64,000 nt of DNA from Selaginella moellendorffii (Eukaryota > Plantae > Lycopodiophyta), in NCBI RefSeq assembly GCF_000143415.4, contig NW_003314399.1:15798-79797 (forward strand), in the 5' to 3' direction. Made by a program: the position numbers and the translations under genes. The notes below the pieces were generated by a model. That model saw only the letters and a list, made by a program, of their open reading frames with translations. It was not told where the DNA came from and did no database searches. Each line of letters opens with the position of its first letter. The first letter of the stretch is position 1. This document shows positions 36,720 through 64,000 of this stretch, piece by piece.

Positions 36720-36969
36720 GAGGAAGTGAGCAACGGTCGAGCTAGTATCAGAAGCTTCGGGTGACAGCAGCAAGCAAGCAAGATGGAGCTGGCACTAGCA
36801 GCACCAGCAGTAGCAGCGGCGGAGGGGCCTACCATTTCACAATCAGGGGATAATTTGCTGCCCAAATCTGGAGCAGCATTACTGCAGAGGATGGGAGTCT
36901 TGGACAAAGATAAGGAGATTAGCACTAACTCTAGTCCAACAAGGTCTCTGATAGAGAACCATCTCAGGA
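36720..36969 (+). pseudogene. Inverted fragment of the OVATE gene 5' end
   Basis: PKSGAALLQRMGVLDKDKEIS...SLIENHLR matches 30045-30325 of the OFP gene. Confidence 0.9.
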
Positions 36970-36984
36970 CATCATTTGTATGTC

Positions 36985-43700: not shown

Positions 43701-45050
43701 ATTATGCTAAGGCCATGCCCATTCACCTTGGTCATACTAGTGGTCCGACATCACTTATATCATAGTCCCGTCTCTTACAGATTGGGCCATCCGTCCATGA
43801 GTGATCATCTTAAATCCACTCCTTAGCATCTTTAGGATGCCTACAGATATGGGTACAACCTTCCCCAATATCCCTGTTATAGTCCCCACCAAGTCCCTTT
43901 TCTGTCCATAGCCGTGTTCACCAATACTACCACTGGGATAAGGCCCACAAGCCCGACCACTAAGTCTCATTGTTCTCTAGGACTTCCTCACCACATGACT
44001 GTATCCTTGGTCACTATACCAGAGGACTACTATTTTTCCTTTCCACAGTCTGGGACTTTGGGACAACATTTCTGAACATTGTACCCCTACGTAAGCCTTG
44101 TGGGTACTCTCCCCGCCTTCCACCTTTGGGTGCTTTAGCCATGGGATTAGAGTGAGGTTCCATTGAGCCACGCTAAATATCCAAGTAGGTAATGCCACCC
44201 ACACTTGGACTGGGAGCATCGACCATTCGATCTCTCAGGGGAACTAGAGCTGGCTCTTGAACACTTCACCAAGCTACCCCGCTTGTCGGTCCGTATTCAC
44301 TTTAGCCTTGGACTTCCCAGTGGTTATTTCATCACCCAGCACTTAGGTATAGCCTTCCTAGGCCAAACTAGCCTTTCCTGGCCAAACTGACTCCACTAGG
44401 GTCCAACCCCCACACTCTCCCTACTATACTTTTGGAACCCCTTGCAGCTTCCCCCCTTGGGGAATGATTGCTTTGGGCTTTCACCCAACAACTTGTATTA
44501 GTATTCGGATTTGGACTTGGACTTGGACTCGGTCTTGGTCTCGGATTCGGACTTGGACTCGGTCTTGGTCTTGGTCTCGGTCTCAATTCCATCTTGGACT
44601 CCATCTCAGGTCCATCTCGGACTCCATCTCGGACTCCATCTTGGACTCCATCTCGGGTCCATCTCAGGTCCATCTCCGACTCCATCTCGGGTCCATCTCG
44701 GACTCCATCTCGGGTCCATCTCCAACTCCATCTCGAGTCCATCTCCAACTCCATCTCGGGTCCATTTCGGACTTTATCTTGGGTCCATCTTAGACTCCAT
44801 CTTGGGTCCATCTCGGACTCTTCTACATATCATGTGTTGGTCCTCTTATGTCCTTTTTCTAGAGACTCACTAATTGCTCACTGTGTGTTCGTTCCTTAAG
44901 CACTTCATTGGGAGTTTCACCCCCACTCTTGACTTTTCAAGTTGAAACTTTTAGTCCAAATGTGTTACGCTCATTTGGCTTCTACCTCAGCCACTACCAT
45001 GTGGCATCCTTTCGGCTCCCCTGTGGGGCCTAGGGATTTTGTGTCTCACA
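40793..45050 (-). mobile_element. Family A LTR element copy 1, 5' part (5' LTR 43483-45050, tRNA-iMet PBS 43468-43479, decayed internal region)
   Basis: TGTGAGAC...GCTTACA LTR followed by TGGTATCAGAGC on the minus strand; internal region matches 59915-60420 and 62190-63908. Confidence 0.9.
44505..44820. repeat. 6-mer and 11/12-mer tandem array inside the family A LTR
   Basis: (ggactt/ggtctt)n followed by (ggactccatctc/gggtccatctc)n. Confidence 0.95.
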
Positions 45051-45265: not shown

Positions 45266-45690
45266 ATAGAATCCTTGTCTAGAAAATCCATAAATGTTGG
45301 AATAACAGACTTATCAAAAACATGAGAAGAGAGCGAAGAAGAAAGAGGAGCTCGAGAAAGGGCATCATCATCAGCCATAGAACTCTCTAAGCGATGAACA
45401 ACATATAAATAATATATTTAAAGCTTCAAAGCCCACTAAGTAGTACAACCAACCAAGTTCTTTAACTTTAATAATGAGGTAATGGCAGCATGATCACCTT
45501 CCAGTAACGTCTCAGAACCATGTAAATATGCAGTCCCATAGACAAGGGAGAATGGGGTCGCAAAGATGGATGTCTTGAAGGATGTCCAAAAGGCCCACAA
45601 CGCTGTAACCAAGTGCTCGTGCCAACGCCTTAGGTGATCCTCCACAAGCTTTGAGATGACTGTCTTCAATATCTTGTTGCTGGACTCCGC

Positions 45691-48600
45691 CTAGCCATTG
45701 CACTCAGGATAATAGCTGCTGCTCTTCACATGCTTGACCTGCAACTGCTGGAGAAGACGCTGCATCACATATCCAAGGAAGCCGCTGCCACGATCAGAAA
45801 CCAAAACTGCGAGAACTCCGAATCGGCAAATTATGTACTCGTAGACAAACTTTGCTGTAGACTGTTGATCTGCTTGTCGCAAAGGGGTGGCCTCGACCCA
45901 TTTTGTGAAATAGTCCGTCGCCACGATGATGTATCGCTGTCCTTTTGAGCTTGGTGGGTTGATCGGGCCAACGAAGTCAAGTCCCCACTGGAAAAAGGGA
46001 CCCGGAGAAGTGATGATCTGGAAAGGAAGACATGGAACATGGCTCTGGGGGTTGAACCGTTGGCACTGCTCACATGACTTTGCATAGGCCAAGCTGTCTT
46101 GGTGAATCCGAGGCCAAAAGTAGCCATGACGCAAGAGAAGCTGTGCTGTAACCTGTCCCGAGAAATGCCCCGCACAAGAGTGGAAAGCGCGAAGGAGCTC
46201 AGGGACCTCGTGTTCCCCCACACACCGCAACAAAACTTCCTGAGAAGTCCTCCTGTAAAGGTGTTCATCAAGAAGGCAAAACCCCCGTGCTCGGATCTCC
46301 AATGCCTTTTGTTGTACTGGTGAGGAATCTGCTGGGAACTGACCTGAATCCAGGTACACCACAACATCCTGTAATGCTGCTGGGACCACAAAGGAGGTAG
46401 CTTCAGCAACCAGGAACTCGCTTGGATCCATCACACGCTTCCGCCGCATGTGAAAAGTTGGTTGGAACTCTTGGATGGTCACAATCCAAGATAAAGTACG
46501 AGGACTATGAACCGGTCGCTGTAAAAGAAAGGTCAGCACATTAAAATAGACATGGAAATGGATACGGGCTCCAGCGAGAAAGTGACGGAATCGCTCCAAG
46601 GTGTAAACAACAGCCACTGCTTCTTTTTCCGCATCCACATATTTCTTTTCAGTCTCCTTGAACGAATGTGAGGCATAATATGTTGCATGTGGTGGCTTGC
46701 CAGGCTGTGAACATTGGCAAAGGCATACTCGAAAAGCCTCTGTACCCATTGTGATGTAAATGTCAAAAGGAAGTTGTCGTTCTGGTGGTTGGAGTACCGG
46801 GGCTATGCGGAGTGACTGCTGTAGTGATTCAAAGGCTTGTTGTTGGGACTCACCCCAGATAAATGGAACACTGTGTTGTAGCAAAGCTACCAGAGGCCGT
46901 GAATGTGCAGCATAGTTGTGGATGAAACGGCGAAAGAAACCCGTTTGCCCAAGGAAACTGCGAAGCTGCTTCAAGTTGGTTGGTGGGTTCCAATCCAGAA
47001 TCTCCTGAGCCTTGGCTACCTGGGGTTTGATCCCATCCTGAGAGACGTCAAAGCCCAGTAACCGGCCTTCGGTTACCCCGAATTTACACTTTGCCGGGTT
47101 CAATGAAAACCTGTGGTGTCGGCAGCGAGTGAAAACCTGTTCCAAGTGCATAAGATGATCCTCAAAGGAGTCCAAGGTCATGCACAGATCATCCATATAC
47201 ACCCTCAAGGTGCCTCCAATCAAGTCGTGAAAGGTGTGGGTCATAAAGTGCTGAAAAGTAGCTCCGGCGTTACACAAGCCGAATGGGAGGACATTGAAAG
47301 CAAAGACGCCCCAAGGTGTCCGGAAGGCCGTAAGATCTCGATGATCTGGATGAATGAAGATCTGGTTGTACCCTGAAAAGCCATCCATGAAAGAGTAGTA
47401 CCGGTGGCCAGCCATCTCATCCACAATCGCATCGATAAACGGAGTTGGAAAGTGATTTTTAGCAGTTGCCTTGTTCAAGTCTCGAAAATCAATGTAGAGG
47501 CAGAGTTTTCCATTTGCCTTGCGTGCAGGGACGAGATTGGCCACCCACTCTGAGCTCTCCAAAGGGTAAATAAAGCCGGCTGCCAGAAGTCGCTCGATCT
47601 CCAACTTCATCTCTGAGTGAGCTGCCGGGCTGAAACGCCGCATTTTTTGACGGACTGGTTTGGCTGACTCTGAAAGCATGATATTGTGCATGATTGTGTC
47701 CATGGGAACTCCTGGGAGCTGGCTGTAGTCCCAAGCAAACACGTCCTTGAAACAGTGAAGGAGATCCAAGAGCTTTGCTGCGTTTGTTGAAGCAAGCGAT
47801 GTGGCAATAAAGACCGGGTCCTTGTCATCACCTAGAAAAACGCCATGAACCCTGGAGTCTGGAGAAACCTTGGTTTCAGGAGGCTCTATCTTTAATTCTT
47901 CCCTGACCCTGGAAACCGAAGAGCAGGGAGTGCCTTTAGCTTCTCGCATCGTGGTGATTGCTTGGTGTGATAACCTGTCTGCCCAAAAGTTTTCTTCACG
48001 GGGGACACTTTGAAAAGACACCTCAGAGAACTCATCCTTCAGGTTGACCGCCCGCTGCCATAGCTCTTTCAGGTTCTCTTTGCAGACTTGGTATTCTCCA
48101 GTAAGTTGGCGTATGATGAGTTGTGCATCTCCAATGAAAGTGACTCGCCTAAACTTGAGGTTTGTGGCCAGCTTCATGGCACTGATGGCCGCCAAGTACT
48201 CTGCTTCATTAGCTGATGTTGCTGGCAAAGTGATAGAGAGGTCAGCTACTTTGTTCTCCGCAGAATCAATCATCCAAACTCCAATGCCGGCAACCTGGTT
48301 TTTGGGGTAGAAAGCACCGTCAAAATAAGCTGTAATCATAGGAGTGGCCTCTTCCTCAAATAAAGATGCTGGGGACACTACATCCGGCAAGACCGTCTCT
48401 GGTAAGTCTGGTAAGAACGTTGCTGTTGGATCCGGAGTCTTTGTTTGTGGTTCTCTTTGCTTCTGATGCTCTAAGTGCTCGATGTCCAATGCAAGGACTG
48501 CAGCCAGGTACTCTGCAAGGGAAGGAAGATCCTCCACCGAAGTCCAGTCCAAGTCTGGTGCTAAAGTTTCAGTGTAATACCCTTGGATTTGTACTGAGGG

Positions 48601-49080
48601 CTCCATGGTAGGAAATTCTGAACTCAAAGAGCTATAACTTGCATGCAGCACGTCCGATTTGCTTGATTCTTCCTGCCAATTGTGTGACTGGATGTCATCT
48701 TCCGTCTCCAAAAAAAAGCATGACAAAATACGCTCGAAGTCTTCAGCTATCGCGATTTTAGTAGGAAGATGCTGGCTGTGTAACACCTCAGGGAGTTGCT
48801 GAGGAGAATTGAGTTCAGCTGTGTCCTGTGAAAGATGGACTCGGTCTGGGGTGACTGTGTCATCAAGCTCGATAAGAGAGAGTTGGTCCCATGCAAAAAA
48901 CGAATCAAGGAGCCCTTCCTCTATCAAGAAACACTCTGAAAAGCTGGATATGTGAGCCCGTATCCTATAAGCCCTGCCCTCAAATAAAGAGGGCCTGTCT
49001 AGAGGCTCAACCTTACTCTCAAATAAAGAGAGTGAAGCTGAGAGATGTCTCGGGCTACCTGACTCACCTCCAACCGTGAG
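45691..49080 (-). CDS. pol: Pol: archaeal-type RNase H, RT (YMDD), degenerate native RNase H, integrase (premature TAG at 45691; frame resumes to ~45532)
   Basis: YFDGA...NEAEYLA...GDAQLII...VPREENFWADRLS precedes RT (FMDGFSGYNQI, PFGLCNAGATFQ, YMDD); integrase GYFWP, WGLDFVGPI, VSDRG. Confidence 0.93.
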   Translation of the reverse strand, partial: LTVGGESGSPRHLSASLSLFESKVEPLDRPSLFEGRAYRIRAHISSFSECFLIEEGLLDSFFAWDQLSLIELDDTVTPDRVHLSQDTAELNSPQQLPEVLHSQHLPTKIAIAEDFERILSCFFLETEDDIQSHNWQEESSKSDVLHASYSSLSSEFPTMEPSVQIQGYYTETLAPDLDWTSVEDLPSLAEYLAAVLALDIEHLEHQKQREPQTKTPDPTATFLPDLPETVLPDVVSPASLFEEEATPMITAYFDGAFYPKNQVAGIGVWMIDSAENKVADLSITLPATSANEAEYLAAISAMKLATNLKFRRVTFIGDAQLIIRQLTGEYQVCKENLKELWQRAVNLKDEFSEVSFQSVPREENFWADRLSHQAITTMREAKGTPCSSVSRVREELKIEPPETKVSPDSRVHGVFLGDDKDPVFIATSLASTNAAKLLDLLHCFKDVFAWDYSQLPGVPMDTIMHNIMLSESAKPVRQKMRRFSPAAHSEMKLEIERLLAAGFIYPLESSEWVANLVPARKANGKLCLYIDFRDLNKATAKNHFPTPFIDAIVDEMAGHRYYSFMDGFSGYNQIFIHPDHRDLTAFRTPWGVFAFNVLPFGLCNAGATFQHFMTHTFHDLIGGTLRVYMDDLCMTLDSFEDHLMHLEQVFTRCRHHRFSLNPAKCKFGVTEGRLLGFDVSQDGIKPQVAKAQEILDWNPPTNLKQLRSFLGQTGFFRRFIHNYAAHSRPLVALLQHSVPFIWGESQQQAFESLQQSLRIAPVLQPPERQLPFDIYITMGTEAFRVCLCQCSQPGKPPHATYYASHSFKETEKKYVDAEKEAVAVVYTLERFRHFLAGARIHFHVYFNVLTFLLQRPVHSPRTLSWIVTIQEFQPTFHMRRKRVMDPSEFLVAEATSFVVPAALQDVVVYLDSGQFPADSSPVQQKALEIRARGFCLLDEHLYRRTSQEVLLRCVGEHEVPELLRAFHSCAGHFSGQVTAQLLLRHGYFWPRIHQDSLAYAKSCEQCQRFNPQSHVPCLPFQIITSPGPFFQWGLDFVGPINPPSSKGQRYIIVATDYFTKWVEATPLRQADQQSTAKFVYEYIICRFGVLAVLVSDRGSGFLGYVMQRLLQQLQVKHVKSSSYYPECNG

Positions 49081-51058
49081 TCATGCATGAGGAAGCATCC
49101 GCCATATAGATGGTTGATGCCACTGCCAACTCAGGAAAAACCTCTGTGAGGTCGGGAGGAAAGTATGGTGTGGAGGCCATCTTAGTCCGAGCTTGCTGGG
49201 CTTGTTGAGAAAGAGCTCTGCCATGGTTGTTGAGAAAGGTGGCGCTATGGGTTCCATCGCTAATTTCTAACTTGCCTTGTGCACTATCAATGGTGCAATG
49301 GGCTGTGACTTGCCATGAGCGGCCAAGGATGTTAGAGTCCTTCAAAGAGGATGTTCCAAGACGTTGGTAGTCAACCACGAGGAAATCCACCTCAGAAATA
49401 ACACCCTGCACAGAGACCTTGACACCACAACAAATTCCCGCTGGAGGAACGATATGGTTGGCGAAGGTTTTGAGCACGATGGAGGAGCTCTCAGTGATCT
49501 GTAGCTGTGCTGAAAGGGCAGCTTCGAGAGAGATAATGTTGCTTCCAGAACTGGAGTCAACCAAAGCATCCATCCTACAAGAGGAAGTACCGATCTGCAC
49601 CGGGACGAAGAATGGACCAGGATCCCCTCCATATCTTGTCATATCGACAATGTGCACCTCTTGAGGAGTCCTCTTGAGAGTGCTCTCTATTGTTCCTGAC
49701 CGTGCAAACTCCTCCAAACGCTGGCCGAATCCTGGGACAAGACACAACATATCTCGGAGCGAAAAGGTGACGGGAGTGTCAACCAGCTGTTGAAGAACTG
49801 GCTCCAGAACAGGAGTAGCTATTGGTGAGATCTCAGAAGGAGGAGAGAGAAGTGACTTGAAAGGGAGTTTACAAGCCACCCTTTGTGTCACTGGGCCTAA
49901 TGACAACGGAGAGTCGCTCTCAACTGGCGCTGAGGGATCTATGGTAGGCTGAGTGGCTACCTTCTTCTTCGCTTGGGCTCGAGTGGCTGCGGTTTGCTGT
50001 TGTTGCCAATAAAGTTCCTCGGCTACCAAAATCATGTTGACCGATGAGACCGGTGCCTTGCCTTTGCTTGACGAAGGAGCTGTCTCAATTGCTTGTCGCT
50101 CCAACTGCTCCTGATATGTCTCTGGACCCTGAGGCTGTGTGGAGTTATCAGCAAAGGGATGTTGTTGGACACGTTGAGAAGATGGAGGCCGAAGCTCTGG
50201 GTGAAGCTTGAAGCAGCGCTGTGTGTTGTGTGTGTTCGTCTCGCAGTGAGTGCACCAACGGGACTTAAATCTGCGTTCCCAAGCTGTAGCAGCCTCTTTC
50301 CTGGACTCTACCAGCTCCTGGAGCAGTTTGTCATGGTGTGATTGCTGTTGAAGAATGATCTCCTTCAGCTGCCGCATCTCATTGGCAAAGTTCTCAAGAG
50401 CCGGGGGTGTATGCTCAATAGCGACAGGCTTTGATGTGGACAGGCGTATAACGGCACAAGGTGACTCTAACGGGATGATGGCTTGGTCAAAATCAACTCT
50501 AGCAACCCCCAAGTCGACCAGAAGCTCTCTTTCCAGCTTTGTGGCAAACGAAAATGCCTCACGGCAAGACCTGAAAGTCTTCTTAAGAAGTTTCCGCTGC
50601 AAGTTCCCACACAGACCTGCTGTGAATGCTGTGATCCCCTGTTGCTCATCTTGGACTACTCTGCGATCCCAACACTGCTTCCAGTAAGCTCGAAAGCCTG
50701 TGATGTAGTCAGGAACAGTCTCGTGAGCACCCTGTCGGAACGAAAAGAGGTCGACAAGTAGCCGATTTGTGGGTTTTTCTTCAACGAAGCGTTCTCTGAA
50801 AGAAGCAAGTAGTGTCTGGAAGTCTGTCCGGTCCTCTGGGAGGAGAGAATCTGCCCAAGTTGTTGCTTTGCCTTTGAGAGACTGCAGGAAGTCGCGGCAC
50901 ATACGATCATCGTCGACGATCATGTTTGTGGTGCAGTAGTAATCAAAGCGACTAACATGCGATGTTGGAGAGACTGTTCCAACACCTGAAAAGACCGGCA
51001 GATCACTCCCCTTCTGCAGAACATGGAGCTGAGGTCGAGCTAAGGGTGGCTGCGCCAT
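49064..51058 (-). CDS. gag: Gag-protease polyprotein of the Tat-like element
   Basis: Retrotrans_gag-like QGAHETVPDYITGF, CCHC knuckle CTHCETNTHNTQRC, protease ALVDSSS...ILGRSW. Confidence 0.9.
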   Translation of the reverse strand: MAQPPLARPQLHVLQKGSDLPVFSGVGTVSPTSHVSRFDYYCTTNMIVDDDRMCRDFLQSLKGKATTWADSLLPEDRTDFQTLLASFRERFVEEKPTNRLLVDLFSFRQGAHETVPDYITGFRAYWKQCWDRRVVQDEQQGITAFTAGLCGNLQRKLLKKTFRSCREAFSFATKLERELLVDLGVARVDFDQAIIPLESPCAVIRLSTSKPVAIEHTPPALENFANEMRQLKEIILQQQSHHDKLLQELVESRKEAATAWERRFKSRWCTHCETNTHNTQRCFKLHPELRPPSSQRVQQHPFADNSTQPQGPETYQEQLERQAIETAPSSSKGKAPVSSVNMILVAEELYWQQQQTAATRAQAKKKVATQPTIDPSAPVESDSPLSLGPVTQRVACKLPFKSLLSPPSEISPIATPVLEPVLQQLVDTPVTFSLRDMLCLVPGFGQRLEEFARSGTIESTLKRTPQEVHIVDMTRYGGDPGPFFVPVQIGTSSCRMDALVDSSSGSNIISLEAALSAQLQITESSSIVLKTFANHIVPPAGICCGVKVSVQGVISEVDFLVVDYQRLGTSSLKDSNILGRSWQVTAHCTIDSAQGKLEISDGTHSATFLNNHGRALSQQAQQARTKMASTPYFPPDLTEVFPELAVASTIYMADASSCMTHGWR

Positions 51059-53093
51059 AGCTTGTAGATCTAAGTCACTGGAATCTGTTGAGGAGGAAGA
51101 GGACTCGGCCCGAGAAGGTGCAGTGTCGTACCTAAGCTGCCTTTGGATGTTGGAAAGTTTACTCCATACTTTAGGGCCTTGAGGTATGGTGAAAGGGTGC
51201 CAATTTGTCGTATGTCTAGTTTATACCGGCATCAAATACCCTGAACACTACAAATGCTTGGTCAAGGCAACTGGGTTGATAGGAGCAAGAAGACTGTAGG
51301 CTAGTGCTCAAGTTGCTCACGTAACCATTGACCCGTAGGATAACCGCCAGAGTAGCCACTGGAGTAGCCGCTGGAGGAGCCACTGGAGTAGCTGGTAGCC
51401 GGTAACTGGGGTAGCCACTGGAGCAGCCACTGGAGTAGCCGCAGGAGTAGCCGCGGGAGTAGCCGGTAGCCGATAACTGGGACCTGAGACCTATAACCGG
51501 TAACCCCTACTCTCGCTCCTACCCTGCGCTTGCTCCAACACCAACTCCTATCCCTGTGCCTATTCCTACTGTCCCTGTTTCTACGCCAACTCTTGTTCCT
51601 GCTCCTCCTGTTCCTGTTCCTACGGTTACCTGTTCCTTGAAGATTGCTTCGTTCCCAAGGAACCCCCGACAAAGGTTAACCCAAAAGAGAAAAATGAGTC
51701 CTCTAGTCTCGATCCTTCTCCATTTTGACTGTCGGTGGGCTCTTTGGCAAGGGCTCAGCCCCGTCTACCCTCTATTGTAGGAATGTGGGAAGAAGCCGCC
51801 TCAATACCCCCTGAAATCCACGAAGAGGTAGCCTAGAACGCCAACATTGTGGAAAAACATGTGCATGTCTGTGATGTAGATTGATACTGAGGCGCCGTTG
51901 GTATTTTTGGAAAGCCTAGGACCAAGAGCACCTCTAGAACTAAACAGTAGCCAAAACAAAGCCCGGAGGAACACGAATTCCTGCTACAAAGATGACCCAA
52001 CTTGGCCGGAGAAGAAAATTCTTTTGCATGCCGTCAATTCGCCCAAATCTAGTGCCAAGAACCACCACTACTCATAGATCTAGGCCAGATCTACAAGCCC
52101 AAATGCATTACCTTGAGAAATTCGGCTAAGGATTCAGGTGAGAAAGTGAAAACCCCAAAATGCTCATCCAACCGAGCCAAGAAATGTTGTATCTCTTCAA
52201 ATACTGCACGGCTTGATGAGCGCCATACTTTGCTAGAAAGAGGAGCTCCAGACTTATCTAACACGACCAAGATCAAAGAAAACCACCGCAAGACGAACAA
52301 GGAATTCCTTCCCAAACTCTGCGGCCAAAAGAAAAGAGAGAAACGACGCTTCAGAAAGTGTTGTGCATCATGCCGGGTTCACCATTTGTTGGGGGAAGGA
52401 GGGGCGCCTCCCCCAACGCTCGCTCAAACACGAGAAATGCTTCACTGCTCTCTGCAAAAATGCCCCCCCTTGCCCTTGTGAGGCAAGGGTTTTATACAAG
52501 GAAGATGGGGAATATTCTAAGGACGAGAATATTCCCTCTCTCTCTCTCTCACTCTCTCGGTGGCTACGCCCTAACAGTTCATGAATAAAGTTCCTAGTTC
52601 AAAGTGTTGATTTGAACTATTGATGATGATGTGACTTAGTTAAAATGACCAAGTGGGAAAAACACATAAGGGAAATGAGCTGTGTCAATGCAATGGTAAT
52701 CTCTAAGAAAGACCTATGAAAGGGTCACAAAGTTGAGCTATGGATAAAGCCCATAGTAGAGAATGCTAAAAAGACTTACTAGGGGTAAATACCCTTTGGA
52801 CTTGGTAAAGTGGAGCTTTTGCCATGGAACCGAAAGAATGCCTCAAGGATGGAGGTAGTGATCCTTTGTTGCTTGGTGCAATAATCAATGGATAGAAGCA
52901 AAAGACTAATGGCCAAGTTTAGGCCATGGGATTCATTGGAAGGAATCCCAATGGCAAAGTTAGCCAAAGAACACTAATGTGTTGAATGCTAACGGATTGT
53001 GGGAAAGGAAATGTGCTTCCAAAGATGGATTCCCAAGTGCTTCAATTTGGCAAAGGTGAAAGTTCCAAGGGAAGGGGTGGCAAGGTAACCAAA

Positions 53094-53670
53094 TGTAGTG
53101 CACCTTATCTCTCTCCCATTAAGCTAACTGGAAAAGGGGCAATTGCTTAATGAGAGAGCCTTTAATGGCTATTTTATCCCCATTTATCCCCTAAGGTTCC
53201 AAGGATTCACGGTGACAATATATCTAAATCTCACTCATCCTATTTTCGCATTCAATCTACCAATCCTTCCATTGTGTAGACCAGCTATTCCATGTGAGGC
53301 AACTAGTCATCCACCCGTACCGTAATCCCACGGTGGATACCTTCGTCTATGGATACTCCACACAAGAGGAAGGACGTACCCATGGATGCCCAATACGTAC
53401 GATTTCAAATTTATGGGTAGGAATATACCTTGCTCAAGGGTATATTATATTTTTAAGTAGCCACTAATCAATGAGAATCGAACCCGTGCCATTTGCTCCG
53501 ATACCACATGTAGTGCACCTTATCTCTCTCCCCTTAAGCCAACTAGAAAAGGGGCAATTGCTTGATGAGAGAGCCTTTAGTGGCTATTTTATCCCTATTT
53601 ATCCCCCAAGGTTCCAAGGATTCACGGTGACAGTATATCCAAATCTCATGCCATGATCATATGCGCTACA
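53094..53670 (-). mobile_element. TRIM (terminal-repeat retrotransposon in miniature), 577 bp
   Basis: Direct repeats 53094-53232 and 53509-53670 (TGTAG...CTACA); tRNA-Met PBS at 53495-53506; perfect TSD CCAAA; empty site at ~59368. Confidence 0.92.
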
Positions 53671-54404
53671 CCAAATGATAAAGCTGTGGATAGCTTTAGT
53701 GCAAATTATGTAACAATAGAACTTAGTGCCTAAAGTGGCACAAATAAAGAACTTCCTAGGATGGGGAAGTAGAATTTGCACAATACGTGCAAAACAAGGT
53801 GTCGAAGACACCTAGGAAGTTGACATTGAGAAGTCAAAATTAAAAGTTTCAAAGTGTGATGGTTATATTGGTAGAAGCCAATACTACTCCTGAATGAGTA
53901 GTCCCATTAAAATAGAGAAGGTGTCTTTAGCAAGTTTAGCATGAACTAAACTAGCAAAAGAGGAAGGACCACCATAAGCGGTCTAATAAGTCTCTAAGTT
54001 GGAGAAACTATGCTCCTTAGAGCATGGACAATGCATGGTGAGCCTTCGATGTCAAACCATTAACGAATATTGCCTAGGTGCCAAGGATGGAAAGGGTAAT
54101 ACATGCTAGTGTTACTTTATAAAATAGTTTATTATTCGATGAGAACATCAAATTTTGTCTATGGGTGGTGGAGTTGTGAGACACAAAATCCCTAGGCCGC
54201 AAAGGGGAGCTGAAAGGATGCCATGTGGTAGTGGCTAAGGCAGAAGCCAAATGAGCGTAACACATTTGGACTAAAAACTCTGACTCAAAACGTAGAGAGC
54301 GGGAGTGAAACTCCCAACGAAGTGTTCAAGGAACGAGCACGCAGCAAGCAATAAGTGAGTCTCTAGAAAAGGGACACGAGAGGACTAACACATGACATGT
54401 GGAA

Positions 54405-54768
54405 GAGTCCGAGATGGGGTCCGAGATGGAGTCCGAGATGGACTCGAGATGGAGTCCGAGATGGACCCGAGATGGAGTCCGAGATGGACCCGAGATGGAG
54501 TCCAAGATGGACCCGAAATGTAATCTGAGATGGACCCGAGATGAAGTCCAAGATGGAATCCGAGATGGACCCGAAGTGGAATCCGAGATGAAGTCCAAGA
54601 TGGACTCGAGATGGAGTCTGAGATGGACCTGAGATGGAGTCCGAAATGGATCCGAGATGAAGTTTGAGATGGACCCAAGATGGAGTTTGAGATGGACCCG
54701 AGATGGACCCGAGATGGAGTCCGAGATGGAACCGAGACCGAGAGCGAGACCAAGACCAAGACCAAGAC
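54405..54768. repeat. GAGATGGAGTCC/GAGATGGACCC tandem array in the family A LTR
   Basis: Direct reading. Confidence 0.95.
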
Positions 54769-55916
54769 TATAGCGCACATGGTTTTGACCCTCTATCCTA
54801 TAGTGATTTACCATAGGATAACACCACGAAGCGGAACCTAAACGCTCTTTATGCCACATGACATATACCACATGCCATATGCCACGTGTCCAAAGGATAG
54901 TGGTGCGAAACTCGAGATTCAGGGCCTTGGGCCATTGAATGAAGGAACAGTGCCAAACTCCCAAGCATGGAGCCAAGGAGCAATGGCACTAGAGCATGGA
55001 ACGACTCTCGAGCATACAGCCCAAGGAGTAAAGGGACAGGAACACGGAGCGACTTGAAATAGTCCTAGAGTATCCAGCATCCCAATGCTAGGACCAGCAC
55101 GCAAAATGGAGCCAAACAGAGTCTGGCACTATTTCGGCATACCGGTGGCAAGGATATGGGTACTCCACCAGCTAGCATGGTGTGAAGTGTGGGCTTAGAC
55201 CCAATCCGGATGCAGAACAAGGATAGGCACGCAAGCGGGAGCTAGACTATGCCTCAGGTTGGTTGGCCATGCCCGACCTAGGTCACCCACTATCCCTACT
55301 ATACATTTGGAACCCCTCATAGTCCCCCCCCCCCCCCCCCCCCCCTTAAGGAAAACATGGTTTGGGCTTGCCTCCCTTAGTACCAGAAGTTAGTCTCTGG
55401 GAAAAACTTGAAACTTACTAAATATGGAATGTCCTTAGATTGCAAATTTGGACACGGCACGAACACCATTGTGTTCAAGACAATCTCTACATTCTGTAGA
55501 TATCCCAAATGAGCAAATCTGGACACTTTCCATAAATAGCATTTCAGACCAAAATAAGACTAACAATAAGAGCATGATAGCAAGGGTGTTTGGCAGACAC
55601 AATAAGCTATCATCTAGCGATATTGAGGGACTAATCTCAATATGCAAGGGTTCTTGTCAAGCTAGTGCAAGACAGAGCAAAAGAGAACTAACAAGCCGGG
55701 CCAAGTATGCTTGGCTAAATAGACATTTAGGGATTCCTTCCTTATGCTTGTCCGGCCAAGTACAGATGCAAAGTCCAGTTTACTAACACTTGAACAAGAG
55801 GGGCTGATAAAGGGAACCAGCAATACTGACCTCCTACTATTGTGGCAATAAGGTAAGAGTGTCTATAAGGACTAGTCGATAGGTAACTTTCGATACCCAA
55901 AGTCACATTCGCGACA
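54769..55916 (-). mobile_element. Solo LTR, family B (copy 2), inserted in the family A repeat array
   Basis: Homologous to 34711-35806; TSD aagac/gagac. Confidence 0.88.
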
Positions 55917-56351: not shown

Positions 56352-58224
56352 TCGAGTCCAAATCTGAGACCGAGACCAAGGCTGAGTCCGAGTCTAAGTT
56401 CAAGTTTGAATACTAATACAGGCTATTGGGTGAAAGCCCAAAGGAATCGTCCCCCAGGGGGGGAGGCTGCAAGGGGTTCCAAAAGTATAGTAGAGAGAGT
56501 GTGGGGGGTTGGACCCAATAGAGCCAATTTGGCCAGGAAAGGCTAGTTTAGCCCAAGAAGGTTGTACCCAAGTGCTGGGTGATAAGATAACCACTGGGAA
56601 GTCCAAGGCTAAAGTGAATATAGACCGACAACTGGGGTAGGTTGGTGAAGTGTTCAAAAGCTGATTCTAGTTCCCCTAGGAGATCGAATGGTTGATGCTC
56701 TCAGTCCAAGTGTGGGTGGCACTACCTACTTGGATACCTGGCATGGCTCAATAGAACCTCACTTTAATCCCATGGCTAGAGCACCTAAAGGCGAAAGGTG
56801 GGGAGAGTACCCACAAGGCTTGCATAGGGTCACGGTGTTCCGAAATGTTGTCCCAAAGTCCCAGACTGTGGAAAGGAAAAGGAGCAATCCTCTGGTATAG
56901 TGACCAGGGATACAGTCATGTGGTAAGGAAGTCCTAGAGGATAGTGGGACTTAGTGGTTGGGCTTATGAGCCTTGTCCCAGTGGCAGTGTTGGTGAACAC
57001 AACCATGGACAGAAAAGAGACTTGGTGGGGACTATAATAGGGATATTGGGGAAGGTTGTACCCTATTTCTAAAGGCATCCTAAAGGTGCTAAGGAGTGGA
57101 TCTAGGATGATCACTCATGGACGGATGGCCCAATCTGTGAGAGACGGGACTATAATGTAGGTGATGTCGGATCACCAGTATAACCAAGGTGAATGGGCAT
57201 GGCCTTAGTGTAACGGGTTGATATATCAGTGGTACCTTGGGGTGTTGATCACGGGATCAAACACATGGAGCACTTGATGATACTCTTGAAAAAAAGATGG
57301 AAGGATAACTGACTTATTCACACAAAGTCCTTTCGTTATTCATGCAACTCCTCATTTCCCGAGTGCATCTTGGTGTTTAAACCTTTCACTATAGTAACAC
57401 TAACAGGATGTTGTTGACACCAAGGTCTCCACCCAAGAAATATAGGTGGCATTTCGAAACCACTGCAACCCTGATAAGTGGGCCAATTTCTTTCCCATAT
57501 TTTGCAGCGAACCCCATGGGGATAACCACATTCTCACCCTTGTCCTTGAACTCGAGCAGTAGTAGCATCAACCTTCATTAGAACAATGTAAGCGACTAAT
57601 GTTTCCATTCTACTTTGGTCACTTAACCATACCTCCGACCACTTGGAGGAGTCTCATTCACAACCTCCATAAGTTCAATTCAAGACTTGGTGCTTGCTCG
57701 CCCCGAGAATGGCATCCATGCCACTCAACCTTTGCACTTGGTCCAAGTGCTCCACGTGTCCGATCCCACAATTGACACCCCAAGGTACCACCAACATATC
57801 AACCCATTACGCTAGGCTATGCCCATTCACCTTGGTCACATCGGTAGTCCAACACCACCTGCATTGCAATCCCATCTCTCCAAAACTGGGCCATCTGTCC
57901 ATGAGTGGTCCTCCCAAATCCACTCCTTAGCATCCCTAGGATACCCGCAGATATGGGCAATAGCTTTCCCCAATATCTCCTTTCCGGTCCTCACCAAGTC
58001 CCTTACTGTCCATGGCCATGTTCACCAACACTGCCACTGGATCAAAGCCCAACCACAGTCCTCTGGGACTTCCTCACTGTGTGACTGTGTCCTTGGTCAC
58101 CACACCAGAGGGCTACTCCTCTTCCTTTCCACAACCTGGGACTTTGGGACAACATTTTGGAACACCATGGCCCTATGCGGGCCTCATGGGTACTCTCCTT
58201 ACCTTCCGCCTTTGGGTGCTCTAG

Positions 58225-58418
58225 TGTAAGCAACCAAAGGGAACGACTCGAGAGACGATCCATGGGGTTCAAATATAGAGGGAAAGGGCCCATGAATAAG
58301 AGTGCACCCCCTTTTCCAATCGGTTAAGGGTCTTGGGATAGTTGGAGTTAAGCGTCCTTGGGTTTGAATAGTACTGGGCTGGGTGACCTCCTGGGAAGTC
58401 CAAACTCAGGAGCTTACA
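58225..58418 (+). mobile_element. Cassandra-like solo LTR carrying a 5S rRNA internal promoter segment (58346-58401)
   Basis: TGTAAGC...GCTTACA termini; perfect TSD TCTAG; AGTTAAGCGTCCTTGGG..TAGTACTGGGCTGGGTGACCTCCTGGGAAGTCC matches the 5S box A-IE-box C region. Confidence 0.9.
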
Positions 58419-58707
58419 TCTAGCCAGGGGCTTAGAGCGAGGTTTCGTTGAGCCACGATTAGTATCTAAGTAGGTAGTGCCACCCACACTTGGACTGGGA
58501 GCATCGACCATTCGATCTCCCGGGGGAACTAGAGTCGGCTCTTGAACACTTCACCAAGCTACCCCGCTTATCGGTCCGTATTCACTCTAGTCTTGGACTT
58601 CCCAGTGGTCAGCTCATCACCCACCACCTGGGTACAGCCTTCCTAGGCCAAACTGGCCTTTTCTAGCCAAACTAGCTCCATTAGGCTCCAACACCCCCCC
58701 CCCCCCG

Positions 58708-58807
58708 NNNNNNNNNNNNNNNNNNNNNNNNNNNNNNNNNNNNNNNNNNNNNNNNNNNNNNNNNNNNNNNNNNNNNNNNNNNNNNNNNNNNNNNNNNNNN
58801 NNNNNNN
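58708..58807. other. Assembly gap (100 N) at the position of the LTR tandem array
   Basis: N run after poly-C. Confidence 1.
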
Positions 58808-60420
58808 CCACTTTGGGGCCTAGGGATTATATGTCTCACAACTCCACCACCCATAGACGAAGTTCGATGTCCTTATTGAACGATAAACTATTTTATAAAG
58901 TAATACCAACATGTATTACCCTTTCCATCCTTGGCACTTTGCCAATATTTGTCAATAGTTTGACACTGAAGGCTCACCATGCCTTGTTCACCCTCTAAAG
59001 AGCATAGTCTCTCCAACTTAGAAACTCATTTGACCACTTGTGATGGTTCTCTCGTTTTATTGGTTTAGTTCTCGCTAAACTTGTTAGAAACACCTTCTCT
59101 AACTCAATCCCACTACTCATTCTCGAGTAGTCTCAATTTCCATCGATATAACCCTTGCACTTTGGAACTTTTAATTCTAACTTCTCGGAGTCTATTTCCT
59201 GGATGTCTCTGACACCTTGCATTACACATATTATGCAACTCCACTTCCCCATCCTAGAAAGTTCTCTACTTAAGGGCACCGTCATCCTCTCTTCTACTTC
59301 ATGTTACCTTTAGCACTAAATTCTAGTTATCATAATTTGTGCTAAGGCTGTCCACGGCCCTATCATTTGGCTACCTTACAACTCCTTCCTTTTGAGCTTT
59401 CACTTTCGCCAAATCAAAGTAATTGGGAATCCATCCTTGGAAACACATTGCCTTCCCCACAATCCGTTAGCAACCAACACCTTCGTGTTCCTGTCCTAAC
59501 CTTGTTATTTGGATTCCTTCCCATGATTCCCATGGCTCTATTTTTTTTTTTTTTTTTTCTGGCCATTAATCTTTGCTCCTATCCTTTGATTGTTGCACCC
59601 AGCAACATAAGATTGCTACCTCCATTTCCGAGGTATCCTTTCAATTCCATAACAAGGACTTTGCTTTGCCAAGTCCGGAGGGTGTTCACCCCTAATACAT
59701 CTCTTTAGCATTTTCTGCTATGGGCTCTATCCACGGCCTAACTTTGTGACCCTCTCAGGGGTCTTTTATAGAGACTACTTTCTTCAGACATGCTATGCCA
59801 TTGCATTGACATAACTCATTTCCCTTAGGTGTTCTTCCCATTTGGTCATCTTGACCAAGCCACACCATTCTCAATAGTTCAAGTCAACACTTTGAATTAG
59901 GAACTTTATTCCTTAACTTCACAAGGACTTTGTCCTTATTTTAGCCATAAGATCACCTAGTGATCTAACCTTGGCACCTTAATAGGTTTGCCAATAGGTA
60001 TTAAGTTTTCTAGACCTTTAAATTGTTCACTATAACCCTGGGGGCATCCTCCACACTTGGCGGTGCACCCAAGCCAACCCTTCTAGCCAAGGGTGCATGG
60101 CAAGTGAGATTGGGTGTCCCCATCTCCTTCACCACGTCTTTGGTGCCACTTGCACCAAAGTGCTCAAGTTAGGTATGCCAAGCCACACTAAGCAATCTAA
60201 CCATGCATCACGACTTCGGGGCATCCCCCGCTTGGCGGTGTGCCCAAGCTAGTCTCCTTACTAAGAGTCCATGACCACCGAAATATAACTATCCTCATAT
60301 TCCAAACCATCACTATACCCTAGTGAGTTGGGACTTGAACCCAAGCACTAGAGGGTCGGGACTCGAACCCAACCTCCGTATATGCATCTACAGATGGAAT
60401 CACCCAGGATGCCTGGCGTG

Positions 60421-63400
60421 TGTGAGACACAAAATCCCTAGGCCCCAAAGTGGAGCCGAAAGGGTGCCATGTGGTAGTGGCCAAAGTGAAAGCCAAACGA
60501 GCGTAACACGTTTGGACTAAAAGCTCCGACTTGAAAAGGTCGAGAGTGGGAGTGGAACTCCCAACGAAGTGCTCGAGGAACGAGCACGAAGCGAACAATA
60601 AACGAGGCTCCAAAAAGGGACCCAAAAAGGACCAACACATGACACGTGGAAGAGTCCGAGATGAACCCGAGATGGACCCAAGTTGGGGTCCGAAGTGGAG
60701 TCCGAAGTGGAGTCCAAGATGGACCCAATTTGGGGTCCAAAATGGAGTCTAAAGTGGAGTCCAAGATGGACCCGAATTGGAGTCCGAAGTGGAGTCCGAA
60801 GTGGAGTCCGAGAAGGACTTGAGATGGAGTCTGAGATGGACCCGAGATGGACCCGAGATGGAGTCCAAGATGGAGTCCGAGATGGACCCGAGATGGAGTC
60901 CGAGATGGACCTGAGATGGAGTCCGAGATGGACCCGAGATGGAGTCCGAGATGGAGTTCGAGATGGAACCAAGATGGAGTCCGAGATGGAGCCGAGATGG
61001 AGTCCGAGATGGAGCCGAGATGGAGTCCGAGATGGACCCGAGATGGAGTTCGAGATGGACCCGAGATGGATCTGAGATGGAACCGGGATTGAGACCGAGA
61101 CCAAGTCCGAGTCCGAAACCGGGACCGAGACCGAGTCCGAGTCCGAGTCTGAGTTCGAGTCCGAGTCCGAATACTAATACAGACAATTGGGTGAAAGCCC
61201 AAAGCGATCATCCCCCCGAGGGGGGGGCTGCAGGGGGTTCCAAAAGTATAGTAGGGAGAGTATGGGGGTTGGAGCCCAGTGGAGTTAGTTTGGCCAGGAA
61301 AGGCCAGTTTGGCCCAGGAGAGGCTAGTTTGGCCCAGAAAGGCCATACCCAGTGTTGGGTGATGAGCTGACCACTGGGAAGTCCAAGAGTCCAAGACTAA
61401 AGTGAATATGGACCGACAAGTGGGGTAGCTTGGGGAAGTATTCAAGAGCCGGCTCTAGTTCCCCCGAGAGATCGAATGGTCAATGCTTCCAATCTAAGTG
61501 TGGTGGCACTACTTACTTGGATACGAGGCGTGGCTCAACGGAACCTCGCTCTAAGCCCGTGGCTAGAGCACCAAAAGGGCAAAAGGTGGGGACAGTACCC
61601 ATGAGGCGGTGAAAAGGAAGAAGAGTAATCCTCTAGTGCAGTGACCAAGGATACGATCACATGGTGAGAAGTCCTAAAGGATAGTGGGACTTAAAGGTCG
61701 GGCTTGCAAGCCTTGATCCAATGGTAGTGTTGGTGAACACAGCCATGGACGGAAAGGGACTTAGTGAGGACTAAAAAAGGGATATTGGGGAAGGCTATTC
61801 CCCATATCGGTGGGCATCCTAAGGATGTTAAGGAGTAGATCTGGGATGATCACTCACGGACGGATGGCCCAGTCTTTGAGAGACGGGACTATGATGCAGG
61901 TGGCATTAGACCACCAGTGTGACCAAGGTAAATGGGCATGGCCTTAGCATAACGGGCCGATACGTCGGTGGTACCTTGGGGTGTCGGTCATGGGATTGGA
62001 CACGTGGAGCACTTGGACCAAGTGCAAAGGTTGAGTGGCATGGATGCCATTCTCGGGGCTAGCAAGCCCCAAATCCTAACTGGGACATATGGAGGTTGTG
62101 AATGAGACTCCTCCAAGTGGTCGGAGGTGTGGTTAAGTGACTAAAGTAAAATGGAAAATTTAGTCGCTTACAACTTGGTATCGGAGCTGTCCCTTAGTCC
62201 GACTTTTATTGGTGCTCAAGTATATCACCACTAGTGTTGGCATCGGAAGGTCCGAGGAGTGGGCCTATCCTTGAGGAGTAGCAGGTTGGGAAGACATGGC
62301 TCTCCATTACAGTTCATGTGTGAACTTGTAGACAAGGTGGTGGATAGAAAAGGGCCAATAATGGAACGACTTTGGGATCTTGGGAATAGTGCAAGGTTTT
62401 CCTCATTTAGTTGAGGAGGTGATCCAGATGAGCATTTGACTCAACAAACTGGCTAATGTAGTTGTGGTAAACAACTATAGTTAGGATCATGGGGAAGATG
62501 CAGACTCCAAAAAAATAAAGGAGTCACAAGATTATCCTCATATAGTTGAGGCTAGTGCTCATAAATTTGAGACCGGAATTGATGACCATGGGAGGTCAAA
62601 TATGGAAGAGGACACAAGTCCTTGAAATGGTAGCCGGGGCTACCTCTAATAAATGCTGGAACCACCCAAGGAGTTGGGGGTGTACTTAGAGGATGAGTTG
62701 GTATTCTCATCACATGGACAAGTAGTTCTAAGGGGCAAAAGGTTGCCCCCAGAGAACGAAATTGAGTGTTGGAATAACACTCATGATGGTGGTCCTGGTG
62801 AGTAGGACATGAATACAAGAAGTTGTATTCCAATGAGCTAGCACCTCAAAGGTAAGACCTTATAGGTCAAGGGATTAGGAAAAGTCCAAAAGGCTGAATG
62901 ACTTAAGTGGAGTCAAGGAATGGTCCTAAAGGACTGATGAAAGCATTTGGACTGAGGTGTGTTGTGCCCCACGAAGGATGGGGAGGATCATGAGATCCAA
63001 GTATGAGAACGATGGGTATCTCATGGGTGGCAGAATGTGCCATACTAAAGTCGTGAGAAAGGTGTTCCCAGAAGAAGCAACTTTGGTGCAGAGTTGTGTG
63101 CGAACACTATGGTGTAGTGCTAACGGATAGTTGGCATGAGAAACGACTGGGTTGGTCTTGGCAAAGACTTAGACACAAGTGCAAAGTGTCATAAAGGCAG
63201 ACTTATGGAGCCGATGGTGTGGGGACACCAAATGGGCCAAGGTGTGATGCCTTCTGATTATGTTGATGGGTTCATGAGAACCCCTTGCCAAGGGAATCCC
63301 AATGGAAATGGGAATGGCATAGCCTAAGCTGGAAGGCATGTGGTAAAGTGTGGTGACCCGGATAATGATGGAGGTGTGCAAGCACCAGCAATGAGTTGTA

Positions 63401-63908: not shown

Positions 63909-64000
63909 TGTAAGCGACTAATTTTTCCATTCTACTTTAGTCACTTAACCACACCTCCGACCACTTGGAGGAGTCTCATTCACAACCTCCATAATCCAAC
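63909..64000 (-). mobile_element. Family A copy 4, LTR end, nested in copy 3
   Basis: tgtaagcgactaatttttccattctactttag interrupts the copy 3 internal region. Confidence 0.88.

Follow-up and report, generated by a model that had tools for sequence, protein, structure and literature searches.

Family A, a high-copy family of LTR elements in the lycophyte Selaginella moellendorffii, is judged with moderate confidence to be a non-coding, LARD-type element and a mosaic relative of the Cassandra TRIM of the same genome. Its Cassandra-like LTR core and Cassandra priming signals mark the two as relatives, which probably share one helper. The evidence comes from a 64,000-nucleotide stretch of contig NW_003314399.1 (positions 15,798 to 79,797), termed the window; all coordinates below are counted from its first letter.

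Architecture and coding capacity of family A

Members of family A have LTRs of 1568–1752 bp and an interior of ~3.8 kb, giving a total of ~7.3 kb, and the family's own ends read TGTGAG...GCTTACA. A 5ʹ LTR delimited by self-comparison at 60421–62172 (plus strand; 1752 bp, TGTGAGAC...CGCTTACA) is followed by the PBS, and the 5ʹ LTR of a second copy occupies 43483–45050 on the minus strand (core ~44290–44497). One 3ʹ LTR is split by a family B solo LTR (54776–55910, minus strand) into an upstream part (54175–54775, plus strand) and a downstream part (56353–57276, plus strand; core ~56420–56640) that is truncated near 57277. Another 3ʹ LTR, at 57587–58840 (minus strand), retains a partial core (58560–58707) and holds both a Cassandra solo LTR and an assembly gap of 100 N (58708–58807). 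Next to it lies the 3ʹ part of the non-coding interior (58841–60420, minus strand), whose minus-strand end is a PPT, ...ATGGGTGGTGGAGT, adjoining the LTR start; the 3ʹ part of a second interior shows the same PPT–LTR arrangement at 52577–54174 (plus strand). The end of a further A LTR (63909–64000, minus strand), 97.6% identical to 62088–62172, is nested in the interior of the element that starts at 60421 and leaves the window. In its upstream portion, the A LTR contains a minisatellite (60652–61170, plus strand; Tandem Repeats Finder) composed of 40 copies of the 12-nt unit GAGTCCGAGATG followed by 13 copies of GAGTCC.

No copy inside the window is intact, and the 5ʹ LTR with its PBS and the PPT with its 3ʹ LTR are read from separate copies. 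The A LTR copies are ~83% alike, and interior copies are 76–90% identical across 0.5–1.3 kb; in a conservation profile of the LTR copies, the core is no better conserved than the remainder. Small HMM profiles of LTR pieces (~90 and 250 nt) served for searching only, and a protein search for additional A copies with a spurious LTR open reading frame gave no matches. Almost no RNA maps to the family.

A reading made earlier from sequence alone (the sequence-only reading) had described the interior as decayed gag/pol-like sequence of a once-coding lineage, a description that does not hold up. Twenty stop-free pieces of the interior gave no Pfam match, and tblastn against it with the gypsy Gag and Pol encoded in the window returned nothing at E<1; remnants of gag, protease, RT, RNase H, and integrase were not recognisable by either method. 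The same tests readily detect a gypsy element at 45691–51058 and a decayed one at 36076–38384. Pieced together from its separate copies, family A is LTR-bounded, longer than 4 kb and free of gag, pol, and env, and its non-coding interior is conserved; on these sequence features, it is a LARD-type non-autonomous element. Since the interior bears no trace of gag or pol, A can be neither the coding parent nor the helper of Cassandra, the two roles previously suggested for it. The window's sole autonomous element, of gypsy type, was also considered as a Cassandra helper and rejected: its LTRs measure 188 bp (TGTTAGG...CAACA), its duplication is 4 bp long (GAAC), and an iMet PBS is lacking.

Cassandra-like modules in family A

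The Cassandra-type solo LTR nested in the inverted A LTR is a 194-bp sequence at 58225–58418 (plus strand) with the ends TGTAAGC...GCTTACA. It is flanked by a 5-bp target duplication, TCTAG (58220–58224 and 58419–58423), and its empty site is represented in five DNA contigs in which 58219 is joined to 58419, skipping 199 nt. Box A (58346–58357) and box C (58376–58388) each carry one mismatch and are spaced by 18 nt, and the Rfam 5S_rRNA model matches 58328–58415 with 35.1 bits (E 1e-5), slightly short of its gathering score of 38. In reads from full-length copies, the LTR is followed by a T and then by the PBS TGGTATCAGAGC, which thus begins 1 nt past the LTR. Taken together, the LTR and the read junctions display the two boxes, the ~18-nt spacing, and the PBS that define Cassandra. 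Among the variants listed for RNA reads, which are mostly host 5S, none falls at box A or box C, so the host 5S gene probably carries the same two deviations. The Cassandra copy number in this genome is very high, and reads across its LTR–PBS and PPT–LTR junctions are present in RNA. For all comparisons, the Cassandra reference consisted of one LTR plus 30-nt read consensuses of its flanks.

The core of the A LTR (61192–61412, plus strand) comprises a terminus-like start (TGAAAGCCCAAAG), a TATA-like block (61235–61260), 20-nt tandem units (61287–61345), and a block resembling the 3ʹ part of 5S (61350–61387). This ~200-bp core is colinear with the entire 194-bp Cassandra LTR, positions 1–192 of which align to 61192–61400. 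The three colinear blocks described in the sequence-only reading all lie where that reading placed them and recur in every one of the four A copies spanning this region. The GCTTACA end that the reading reported for both LTRs is likewise seen in the sequence.

The core resemblance was spotted post hoc, and no single core alignment attains a conventional E-value. With the Cassandra LTR as a blastn query against the window, the sole match in the A core is the 13-mer CTGGGAAGTCCAA (E 0.41); an A-core profile run with nhmmer has two matches in the Cassandra LTR (E 0.94 and 2.2), and nhmmer with the single Cassandra LTR as query gives no family A match. Whole-LTR local alignment yields p values from 0.013 to 0.09 depending on the scoring scheme, lying at 0.05–0.09 under some schemes, and weak similarity can also be aligned in other registers, for example by pairing the TATA-like block with the 5S IE region. 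All of this would suit a resemblance due to chance plus one short motif, with true sharing limited to the priming signals and the part of the interior next to the PBS. That account is nonetheless unlikely, because two independent best matches are colinear, because the match improves when the plant's own 5S replaces the Cassandra copy, and because sequence exchange between A and Cassandra is proven independently elsewhere, by the PPT-side 27-mer described below. In the joint test, the Cassandra LTR was cut into a non-5S half (58225–58327) and a 5S half (58328–58418). For both halves, the top local match in the window falls in the A core and on one and the same strand, with diagonal offsets of +14 and −6 nt in the two full A copies. 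Shuffled queries were colinear in 5–7 of 400 cases, and in no case with scores as high as the real ones. Similarly, of 282 real 1750-nt stretches that contain neither A nor Cassandra, none matched both halves combined; the first-half score was reached in none of them and the second-half score of 26 in 1.8%. The single-match statistics of the core are weak, and its joint test is strong.

The 5S component of family A is small. Host 5S, read from RNA, matches the A core at TGACCA-CTGGGAAGTCCAAG with 20 of 21 positions identical, closer than the Cassandra copy does; the score was reached by none of 400 shuffles for two A copies and by 3–5 of 400 for the other two. This 21-nt 3ʹ block is the only host 5S-like part of A. 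Box A (RGTTAAGYRHGY; criterion from PMC7215508) has no match in the A core at ≤1 mismatch, and the sole box A-like matches in the A LTR (GGTTAAGTGACT) lie close to the end of the LTR, ~750 nt past the box C-like block and in reversed order. Box C (RRRATRGGTRACY, 15–25 nt after box A) is absent from the A cores at ≤2 mismatches, the best register found by eye having four. Rfam 5S_rRNA gives no match at E ≤10 in two A copies, and an Rfam search of families A and B yielded no 5S; SCARNA18 matched weakly, with 22.5 bits where the gathering score is 40 and with E 0.007 for a search space of 300 nt, and these matches are attributed to chance. The 20-nt unit AGTTTGGCCCAGGAAAGGCC is repeated in tandem 3.0 times at 61287–61345 (Tandem Repeats Finder) and twice in other A copies. 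In family A, these units stand in place of the box A/IE region, and of the 5S domain the 3ʹ third is present. The earlier proposal that short tandem units replaced box A is thus borne out, while the box C-like part said to persist does so only in degenerate form. From its sequence, the 5S piece of A appears to be a fossil that would lack Pol III promoter function.

The sharing extends past the LTR, where the iMet PBS and PPT previously noted for A are both confirmed. The PBS at 62176–62187 (plus strand; TGGTATCGGAGC) has one mismatch to the iMet PBS and lies 3 nt past the LTR, and that of the second copy (43468–43479, minus strand) is exact. The first 17 nt beyond the A PBS resemble the Cassandra flank, and read-derived flanks, anchored tests, a 27-mer test, and the alignment of both A copies delimit a Cassandra-like internal domain of 158 nt (62188–62345, plus strand). 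This domain ends in GTGAACTTGTAGACAAGGTGGTGGAT, which is identical at 23 of 27 positions to the sequence preceding Cassandra 3ʹ LTRs. The Cassandra PPT-side 27-mer recurs 147–173 nt past both A 5ʹ LTRs (23/27 and 22/27 identical, the second copy's at 43310–43335); 0 and 3 of 1000 shuffles reached these scores, and the A sites are the best places in the window. Anchored tests of A against Cassandra gave p 0.005–0.02 for the PBS flank and p 0.001 for the PPT. For an unrelated control TRIM with the same PBS (53088–53648), the PPT did not match (p 0.19), and the PBS flank gave p 0.02, a score at least as good as that of one A copy.

Origin of the shared modules

The Cassandra modules were most likely acquired by A through nesting or recombination. 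Their route into A would have been nested insertion, and/or exchange at shared sequences by template switching or recombination, after which they would have been amplified as part of A, with one shared autonomous element copying both families. The young Cassandra solo LTR, with its target duplication inside an A LTR, provides a precedent for capture. Moreover, the direction from Cassandra to A is more economical than the reverse, because the 5S of A is a putative promoter-less fossil and that of Cassandra is near intact. Around the A core itself, neither a target-site duplication nor clean TG...CA ends are recognisable, so nested insertion is a putative route. In non-autonomous LTR families, including those of sugar beet (PMC13570524) and pear Cassandra (PMC4079214), the LTR, the PBS/PPT, and the interior follow partly independent evolutionary courses and recombine, and tandem and multi-LTR forms are common (PMC13570524, PMC4079214). 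Unlike the beet and pear cases, module exchange here would join a Pol III-type TRIM with a LARD and include an LTR core and a 5S remnant.

Family B bears on the same question. The alignment of B LTRs defines a 77-nt module (55285–55375, minus strand; also 35232–35311, plus strand) for which nhmmer reports similarity to the A core's first half at E 7e-8 and 1.4e-5. Family B shares just these first 77 nt, with a similarity that seemingly begins a few bases before the terminus-like TG. Descent of a promoter module from a common ancestor therefore fits as well as capture. A combined A and B profile of the first core block did not retrieve the Cassandra LTR, and B shows no significant match to 5S (p ~0.3). 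A metagenome scan with the Cassandra pattern recovered just two foreign plant Cassandras. The non-5S TATA-like block was found in neither, and the non-5S match to the A core is accordingly lineage-specific.

The sequence-only reading had instead placed the 5S capture that created Cassandra in A's LTR lineage, with A or a coding relative bearing A-type LTRs as parent or helper. The core, termini, PBS, and PPT common to A and Cassandra would agree with such an origin, as would the B LTRs, whose partial core indicates that a lineage of large LTRs around the module exists. Nothing shows that capture took place there, however, and the proposal is improbable: A has no coding remnant, its 5S part is degenerate where that of Cassandra is near intact, and Cassandra-type PPT-side sequence downstream of its PBS resembles an absorbed Cassandra unit. 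Furthermore, Cassandra is reported from ferns and angiosperms, with an estimated age of more than 250 My (PMC10886601, PMC7215508), whereas the A copies are ~83% alike, and the window's only autonomous element has other ends, another duplication length, and no iMet PBS. Least probable of all is a separate acquisition without Cassandra, in which part of a true 5S gene or of some other 5S-derived repeat entered the A LTR. In its favour, host 5S and the A block coincide at two sites where Cassandra deviates (ACCAC versus ACCTC, CCAAG versus CCAAA). Against it, the non-5S half of Cassandra aligns too, upstream at the right distance; ACCAC occurs in about one-fifth of the genomic 5S-like copies mapped to the Cassandra LTR (a set in which 5S genes and Cassandra are inseparable); and Cassandra is known to mirror changes in host 5S (PMC10853983).

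Relation to known elements and significance

The solo LTR resembles published Cassandra elements (Kalendar et al. 2008; PMC7215508; PMC10853983) in the spacing of boxes A and C and in its 5-bp duplication. A 5S-bearing TRIM is thereby documented in Selaginella; a literature search found no report of Cassandra from this genus, and a 48-genome TRIM survey that included S. moellendorffii reported 5S sequences to be confined to Cassandra among TRIM families (PMC4717578). Family A shares with Cassandra the colinear core, PBS, PPT, and ends. However, at ~7.3 kb and with LTRs of 1.6–1.75 kb, it far exceeds the miniature size of such elements (<~1 kb, with short LTRs), and since box A and an Rfam 5S match are missing and box C is degenerate, it is not Cassandra by the published definition. 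Its long LTRs, conserved multi-kilobase interior devoid of gag and pol, high copy number, and helper dependence are those of LARDs such as Sukkula (PMC7215508, PMC13570524). A literature search found no LARD with a Cassandra LTR inside its own LTR and Cassandra interior behind its PBS. The TRIMs Ajax and Helenus (TRIMp3; PMC10886601) are similar to A in that their LTRs hold just part of a small-RNA gene, and Helenus-1_SMo shows that Selaginella has small-RNA-bearing TRIMs (PMC10886601). Those elements are tiny and keep the promoter part, whereas A is large and keeps the non-promoter 3ʹ part.

Identifying the autonomous element behind Cassandra mobilisation is an acknowledged open problem, to which this locus gives no answer because A is itself non-autonomous. 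The locus does show that the lycophyte Cassandra is not isolated, its LTR core, ends, PBS region, interior, and PPT being common to a large non-coding family. These shared signals provide a concrete, searchable helper signature: an iMet PBS followed by a GGTCTCGGGTCCGAC-like flank, and a GTGGTGGA PPT. Tentatively, and with considerable doubt, Pol III-driven Cassandra, the Pol II-type LARD, and family B may be branches of one LTR lineage that has a common promoter-proximal core and is serviced by one autonomous element, for which TGT(A/G)AG...GCTTACA ends, together with the same PBS, flank, and PPT, form a candidate joint signature. If so, family A would illustrate the loss or gain of a 5S promoter within an LTR, and the signature would lead directly to the long-sought Cassandra helper.

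Family A and its neighbours in the nested stack

Self-comparison within the window resolves its right third into a stack of nested retroelements. The high-copy family A contributes LTRs at 45050 to 43483 (minus), 54175-54775 plus 56353-57276 (plus; interrupted by a solo LTR of family B, a second large LTR family, and truncated near 57277), 58840 to 57587 (minus; holding a 100-N gap), 60421-62172 (plus) and 63993 to 63909 (minus; continuing beyond the window edge). Directly after the 5ʹ LTRs stands A(C/T)T followed by TGGTATC(A/G)GAGC, and directly before the 3ʹ LTRs stands ...ATGGGTGGTGGAGT. Assembled from joined pieces, the interior measures ~3.8 kb and the whole element ~7.3 kb. In its upstream half the LTR consists of a minisatellite with a 12-nt unit (60652-61170; GAGTCCGAGATG, ~40 units), and this repeat gives rise to long spurious ORFs on either strand, such as one of 335 aa at 60438-61445 (minus).

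The sequence-only reading had called the interior decayed gag/pol-like and proposed family A as a helper of Cassandra, the TRIM with 5S boxes. Neither proposal survives. Twenty pieces without stops (45-89 aa), taken from the sense frames of all four A interior stretches, match no Pfam family at E<0.1, and tblastn with Gag and Pol of the window's gypsy element gives a best E of 1.2 in the A interior; the same queries do recover a separate decayed gypsy at 36076-38384. Judged by its sequence, family A is a non-coding, LARD-type element, and its lack of coding capacity in both searches disqualifies it as a helper.

The sole autonomous element in the window is that Ty3/gypsy (45530-52576, minus). 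Its pol ORF (45691-48927) encodes RT, RNase H and integrase, with an additional RNase H-like domain ahead of RT, and gag is a separate ORF upstream of pol (49064-51058). The element is young, inserted in the A interior, and its integrase is cut near 45530. Its 188-bp LTRs, 40606-40793 (plus) and 52389-52576 (minus), are 97.4% alike, each beside the same 4-bp duplication, GAAC; their opposite strands and the cut integrase therefore point to an inversion of ~5 kb in which the 5ʹ half of the A element was turned round as well. Gypsy was rejected as a helper of Cassandra or A, because its ends differ, its duplication is 4 bp long and it lacks an iMet PBS.

A complete small TRIM (53088-53648, minus) also sits in the A interior and is missing from the copy at 59271-59364. 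It has 146-nt LTRs 93% alike, the PBS TGGTATCGGAGC at 53495-53506, a purine-rich tract before the 3ʹ LTR and a tRNA T-arm-like GGCACGGGTTCGATTCTC in its interior, and shows no relation to Cassandra beyond its PBS and a weakly similar flank. Elsewhere in the window, an acyl-activating-enzyme ORF (11758-13386) is 96% identical to a Selaginella moellendorffii protein, the next best matches being 56-66%, which places the window in this species or one very closely related to it.

The Cassandra LTR and the family A core

Cassandra is defined by 5S boxes and an iMet PBS (PMC7215508), has been reported in ferns and angiosperms (PMC10853983) and has no known helper (PMC10886601). The window's only Cassandra LTR is a 194-bp solo LTR (58225-58418; TGTAAGC...GCTTACA) with TCTAG on either flank, and its empty site is seen in DNA contigs of the same organism as a joint skipping 199 nt (194 + 5). 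The Rfam 5S model matches 58328-58415 (35.1 bits, E 1e-5), slightly below the gathering score. Boxes A and C of the PMC7215508 definition (58346-58388) stand 18 nt apart, each one base off the published Cassandra/5S consensus. The plant's own 5S RNA was mostly recovered from RNA reads (3ʹ part ...GGGTGACCACCCGGGAAGTCCAAGTGACCCCCTC, then a T run). Because no variant at box A or C is among those listed for these reads, which are mostly host 5S, both deviations are probably present in the host gene too, in agreement with the mirroring of host 5S mutations by Cassandra elsewhere (PMC10853983). Another 34-39 RNA reads at 58349-58418 form a second class, present in a related organism too, in which the 5S-like stretch lies between different flanks (...GCATGCACTTGGG before, ACTTGTGCATGTGTGCC... 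after); this class may represent a single expressed locus containing a Cassandra-derived piece.

Three blocks said to be shared by the A and Cassandra LTRs are in place and, by alignment, recur in every A copy covering the region, and the common GCTTACA end is confirmed. Single comparisons of the two LTRs are weak on their own: blastn finds a 13-mer, nhmmer two matches (E 0.94 and 2.2), and whole-LTR local alignments give p 0.013-0.09, varying with scoring. Colinearity decides the matter: for a joint test, the Cassandra LTR was cut into a non-5S and a 5S half, each searched separately. The best match of each half is the A core, on the same strand, and the two lie nearly on one diagonal (offset +14 nt where a third 20-nt unit is present and -6 nt in the other copy). 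Dinucleotide shuffles were colinear in 5-7 of 400 cases and colinear with equally high scores in 0/400. Among 282 real windows of 1750 nt from the same DNA, A and Cassandra excluded, none reached the first half's score; the second half reached 26 in 1.8% and 28 in none, and both halves' scores occurred together in none. Under permissive scoring, the alignment spans the Cassandra LTR from its first base (TGTAAGCAACCAAAG vs TGAAAGCCCAAAG at 61192) as far as the final few. Homology of the A core (61192-61412) to the whole Cassandra LTR is thus suggested with good confidence, the four A copies compared not being independent of each other.

Two metagenome contigs hold ordinary Cassandras from other plants (L001:1240-1665, minus; L002:5935-6450), both with an iMet PBS, one with grass-type LTRs starting TGTAACACCC. 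They have the 5S sequence and PBS but lack the TATA-like block, so the non-5S similarity is specific to this genome's lineage.

The 5S remnant in family A

Within the A core, TGACCA-CTGGGAAGTCCAAG matches the plant's own 5S at 20/21; this score is attained in 0/400 shuffles for two copies and in 3-5/400 for the remaining two. The Cassandra copy, with ACCTC and CCAAA, fits the block less well than host 5S does; upstream of the block, AGTGCTGGG matches AGTACTGGG. The proposed replacement of box A by short tandem repeats stands: box A is absent from the core, and AGTTTGGCCCAGGAAAGGCC, two to three times in tandem, takes the box A/IE position. A box C-like part was also proposed; the 3ʹ 5S block does persist, but the core holds no box C within 2 mismatches. 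Rfam finds no 5S match in the two A copies tested. In an RNA run covering the Cassandra 5S region well (~12% of the run read), 1-2 reads lie on most of A LTR 57582-57991 and 0 on the A core part 58443-58707. Since boxes and Rfam match are missing and RNA on these A stretches is near zero, the 5S piece is taken to be fossil sequence that no longer serves as a Pol III promoter.

Rfam also matches the A core weakly to SCARNA18, a C/D-box scaRNA, at 61353-61421 and 44280-44341 (minus), scoring 22.5 bits where the gathering score is 40; with a C box-like GUGAUGA and no D box, these stretches were judged chance matches.

Shared signals and the origin of the core

Full-length Cassandra copies are represented by RNA reads, their flanks known as 30-nt read consensuses: LTR, T, TGGTATCAGAGC and GGTCTCGGGTCCGACTC downstream, and ...GTGAACTTGCAGGGAAGCGTGGTGGAT before the LTR upstream. 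Compared with these, A is alike in its ends, PBS flank and PPT. The LTRs start TGTGAGAC in A vs TGTAAGCA in Cassandra, and the PBS flanks read TGTCCCTTAGTCCGACT vs GGTCTCGGGTCCGACT (p 0.005-0.02). The PPTs, GGGTGGTGGAGT vs GCGTGGTGGAT, each followed by TG, give an anchored p of 0.001; the neighbouring TRIM with the same PBS, as a control, gives 0.19. The strongest evidence outside the LTR core is a Cassandra 27-mer preceding its 3ʹ LTRs, which recurs 147-173 nt downstream of each of two A 5ʹ LTRs (62320-62345, 23/27; 43335-43310, 22/27). These are the window's two best places for it, and shuffles reached their scores in 0/1000 and 3/1000 cases. The A interior thus appears to open with a Cassandra-like interior between Cassandra's PBS and PPT, a likeness tested at its two ends.

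In Cassandra's PPT-side flank (the read consensus before 58225) and at 62320-62345, the stretch GGAAGCGTGGTGG probably looks like the D-arm/anticodon-stem region of a plant initiator tRNA-Met read in the sense direction, which would make an odd partner for an iMet PBS. Behind the Cassandra-like PPT, a 290-bp stretch (62348-62637), bounded by the short direct repeats AATAATGGAAC and AATAAATGCTGGAAC, is in the 60421 copy and missing from the 45050 copy. Within it, the opening 70 nt of the Cassandra LTR have faint counterparts (p 0.04-0.07), which are not relied upon, and so does the Cassandra TATA-like block (62580-62626).

Several independent pieces establish the relationship of A and Cassandra. 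As to its origin, the favoured route is that the A core would have been captured from Cassandra, because the window offers a direct example of a Cassandra solo LTR within an A LTR (58225-58418), the core has a Cassandra terminus look-alike besides A's own Cassandra-like terminus 770 bp upstream, the A interior resembles a Cassandra unit that A has taken up, with the joint at the PBS, and 5S is decayed in A and retained in Cassandra. Two points oppose capture: no recognisable duplication surrounds the core, and family B has part of it, as common descent of a promoter module would also explain. Two ~1.1-kb solo LTRs represent B, one on the plus strand (34712-35808) and one on the minus strand within an A LTR (54776-55910). 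What they have in common with the core is confined to its first 77 nt (E 7e-8 and 1.4e-5), running from GGTGAAA... up to the TATA-like block, and B shows no significant 5S similarity. Two or more large LTR families thus have a promoter-proximal module in common, which Cassandra shares less strongly.

Module shuffling between non-autonomous LTR families is described in sugar beet (PMC13570524) and pear (PMC4079214). A TRIM survey including S. moellendorffii found 5S sequence in no TRIM family except Cassandra (PMC4717578), and the literature searched reports no LARD with a Cassandra LTR inside its own LTR. By capture or by common descent, the shared cis signals lead us to infer that A and Cassandra are replicated by the same machinery.
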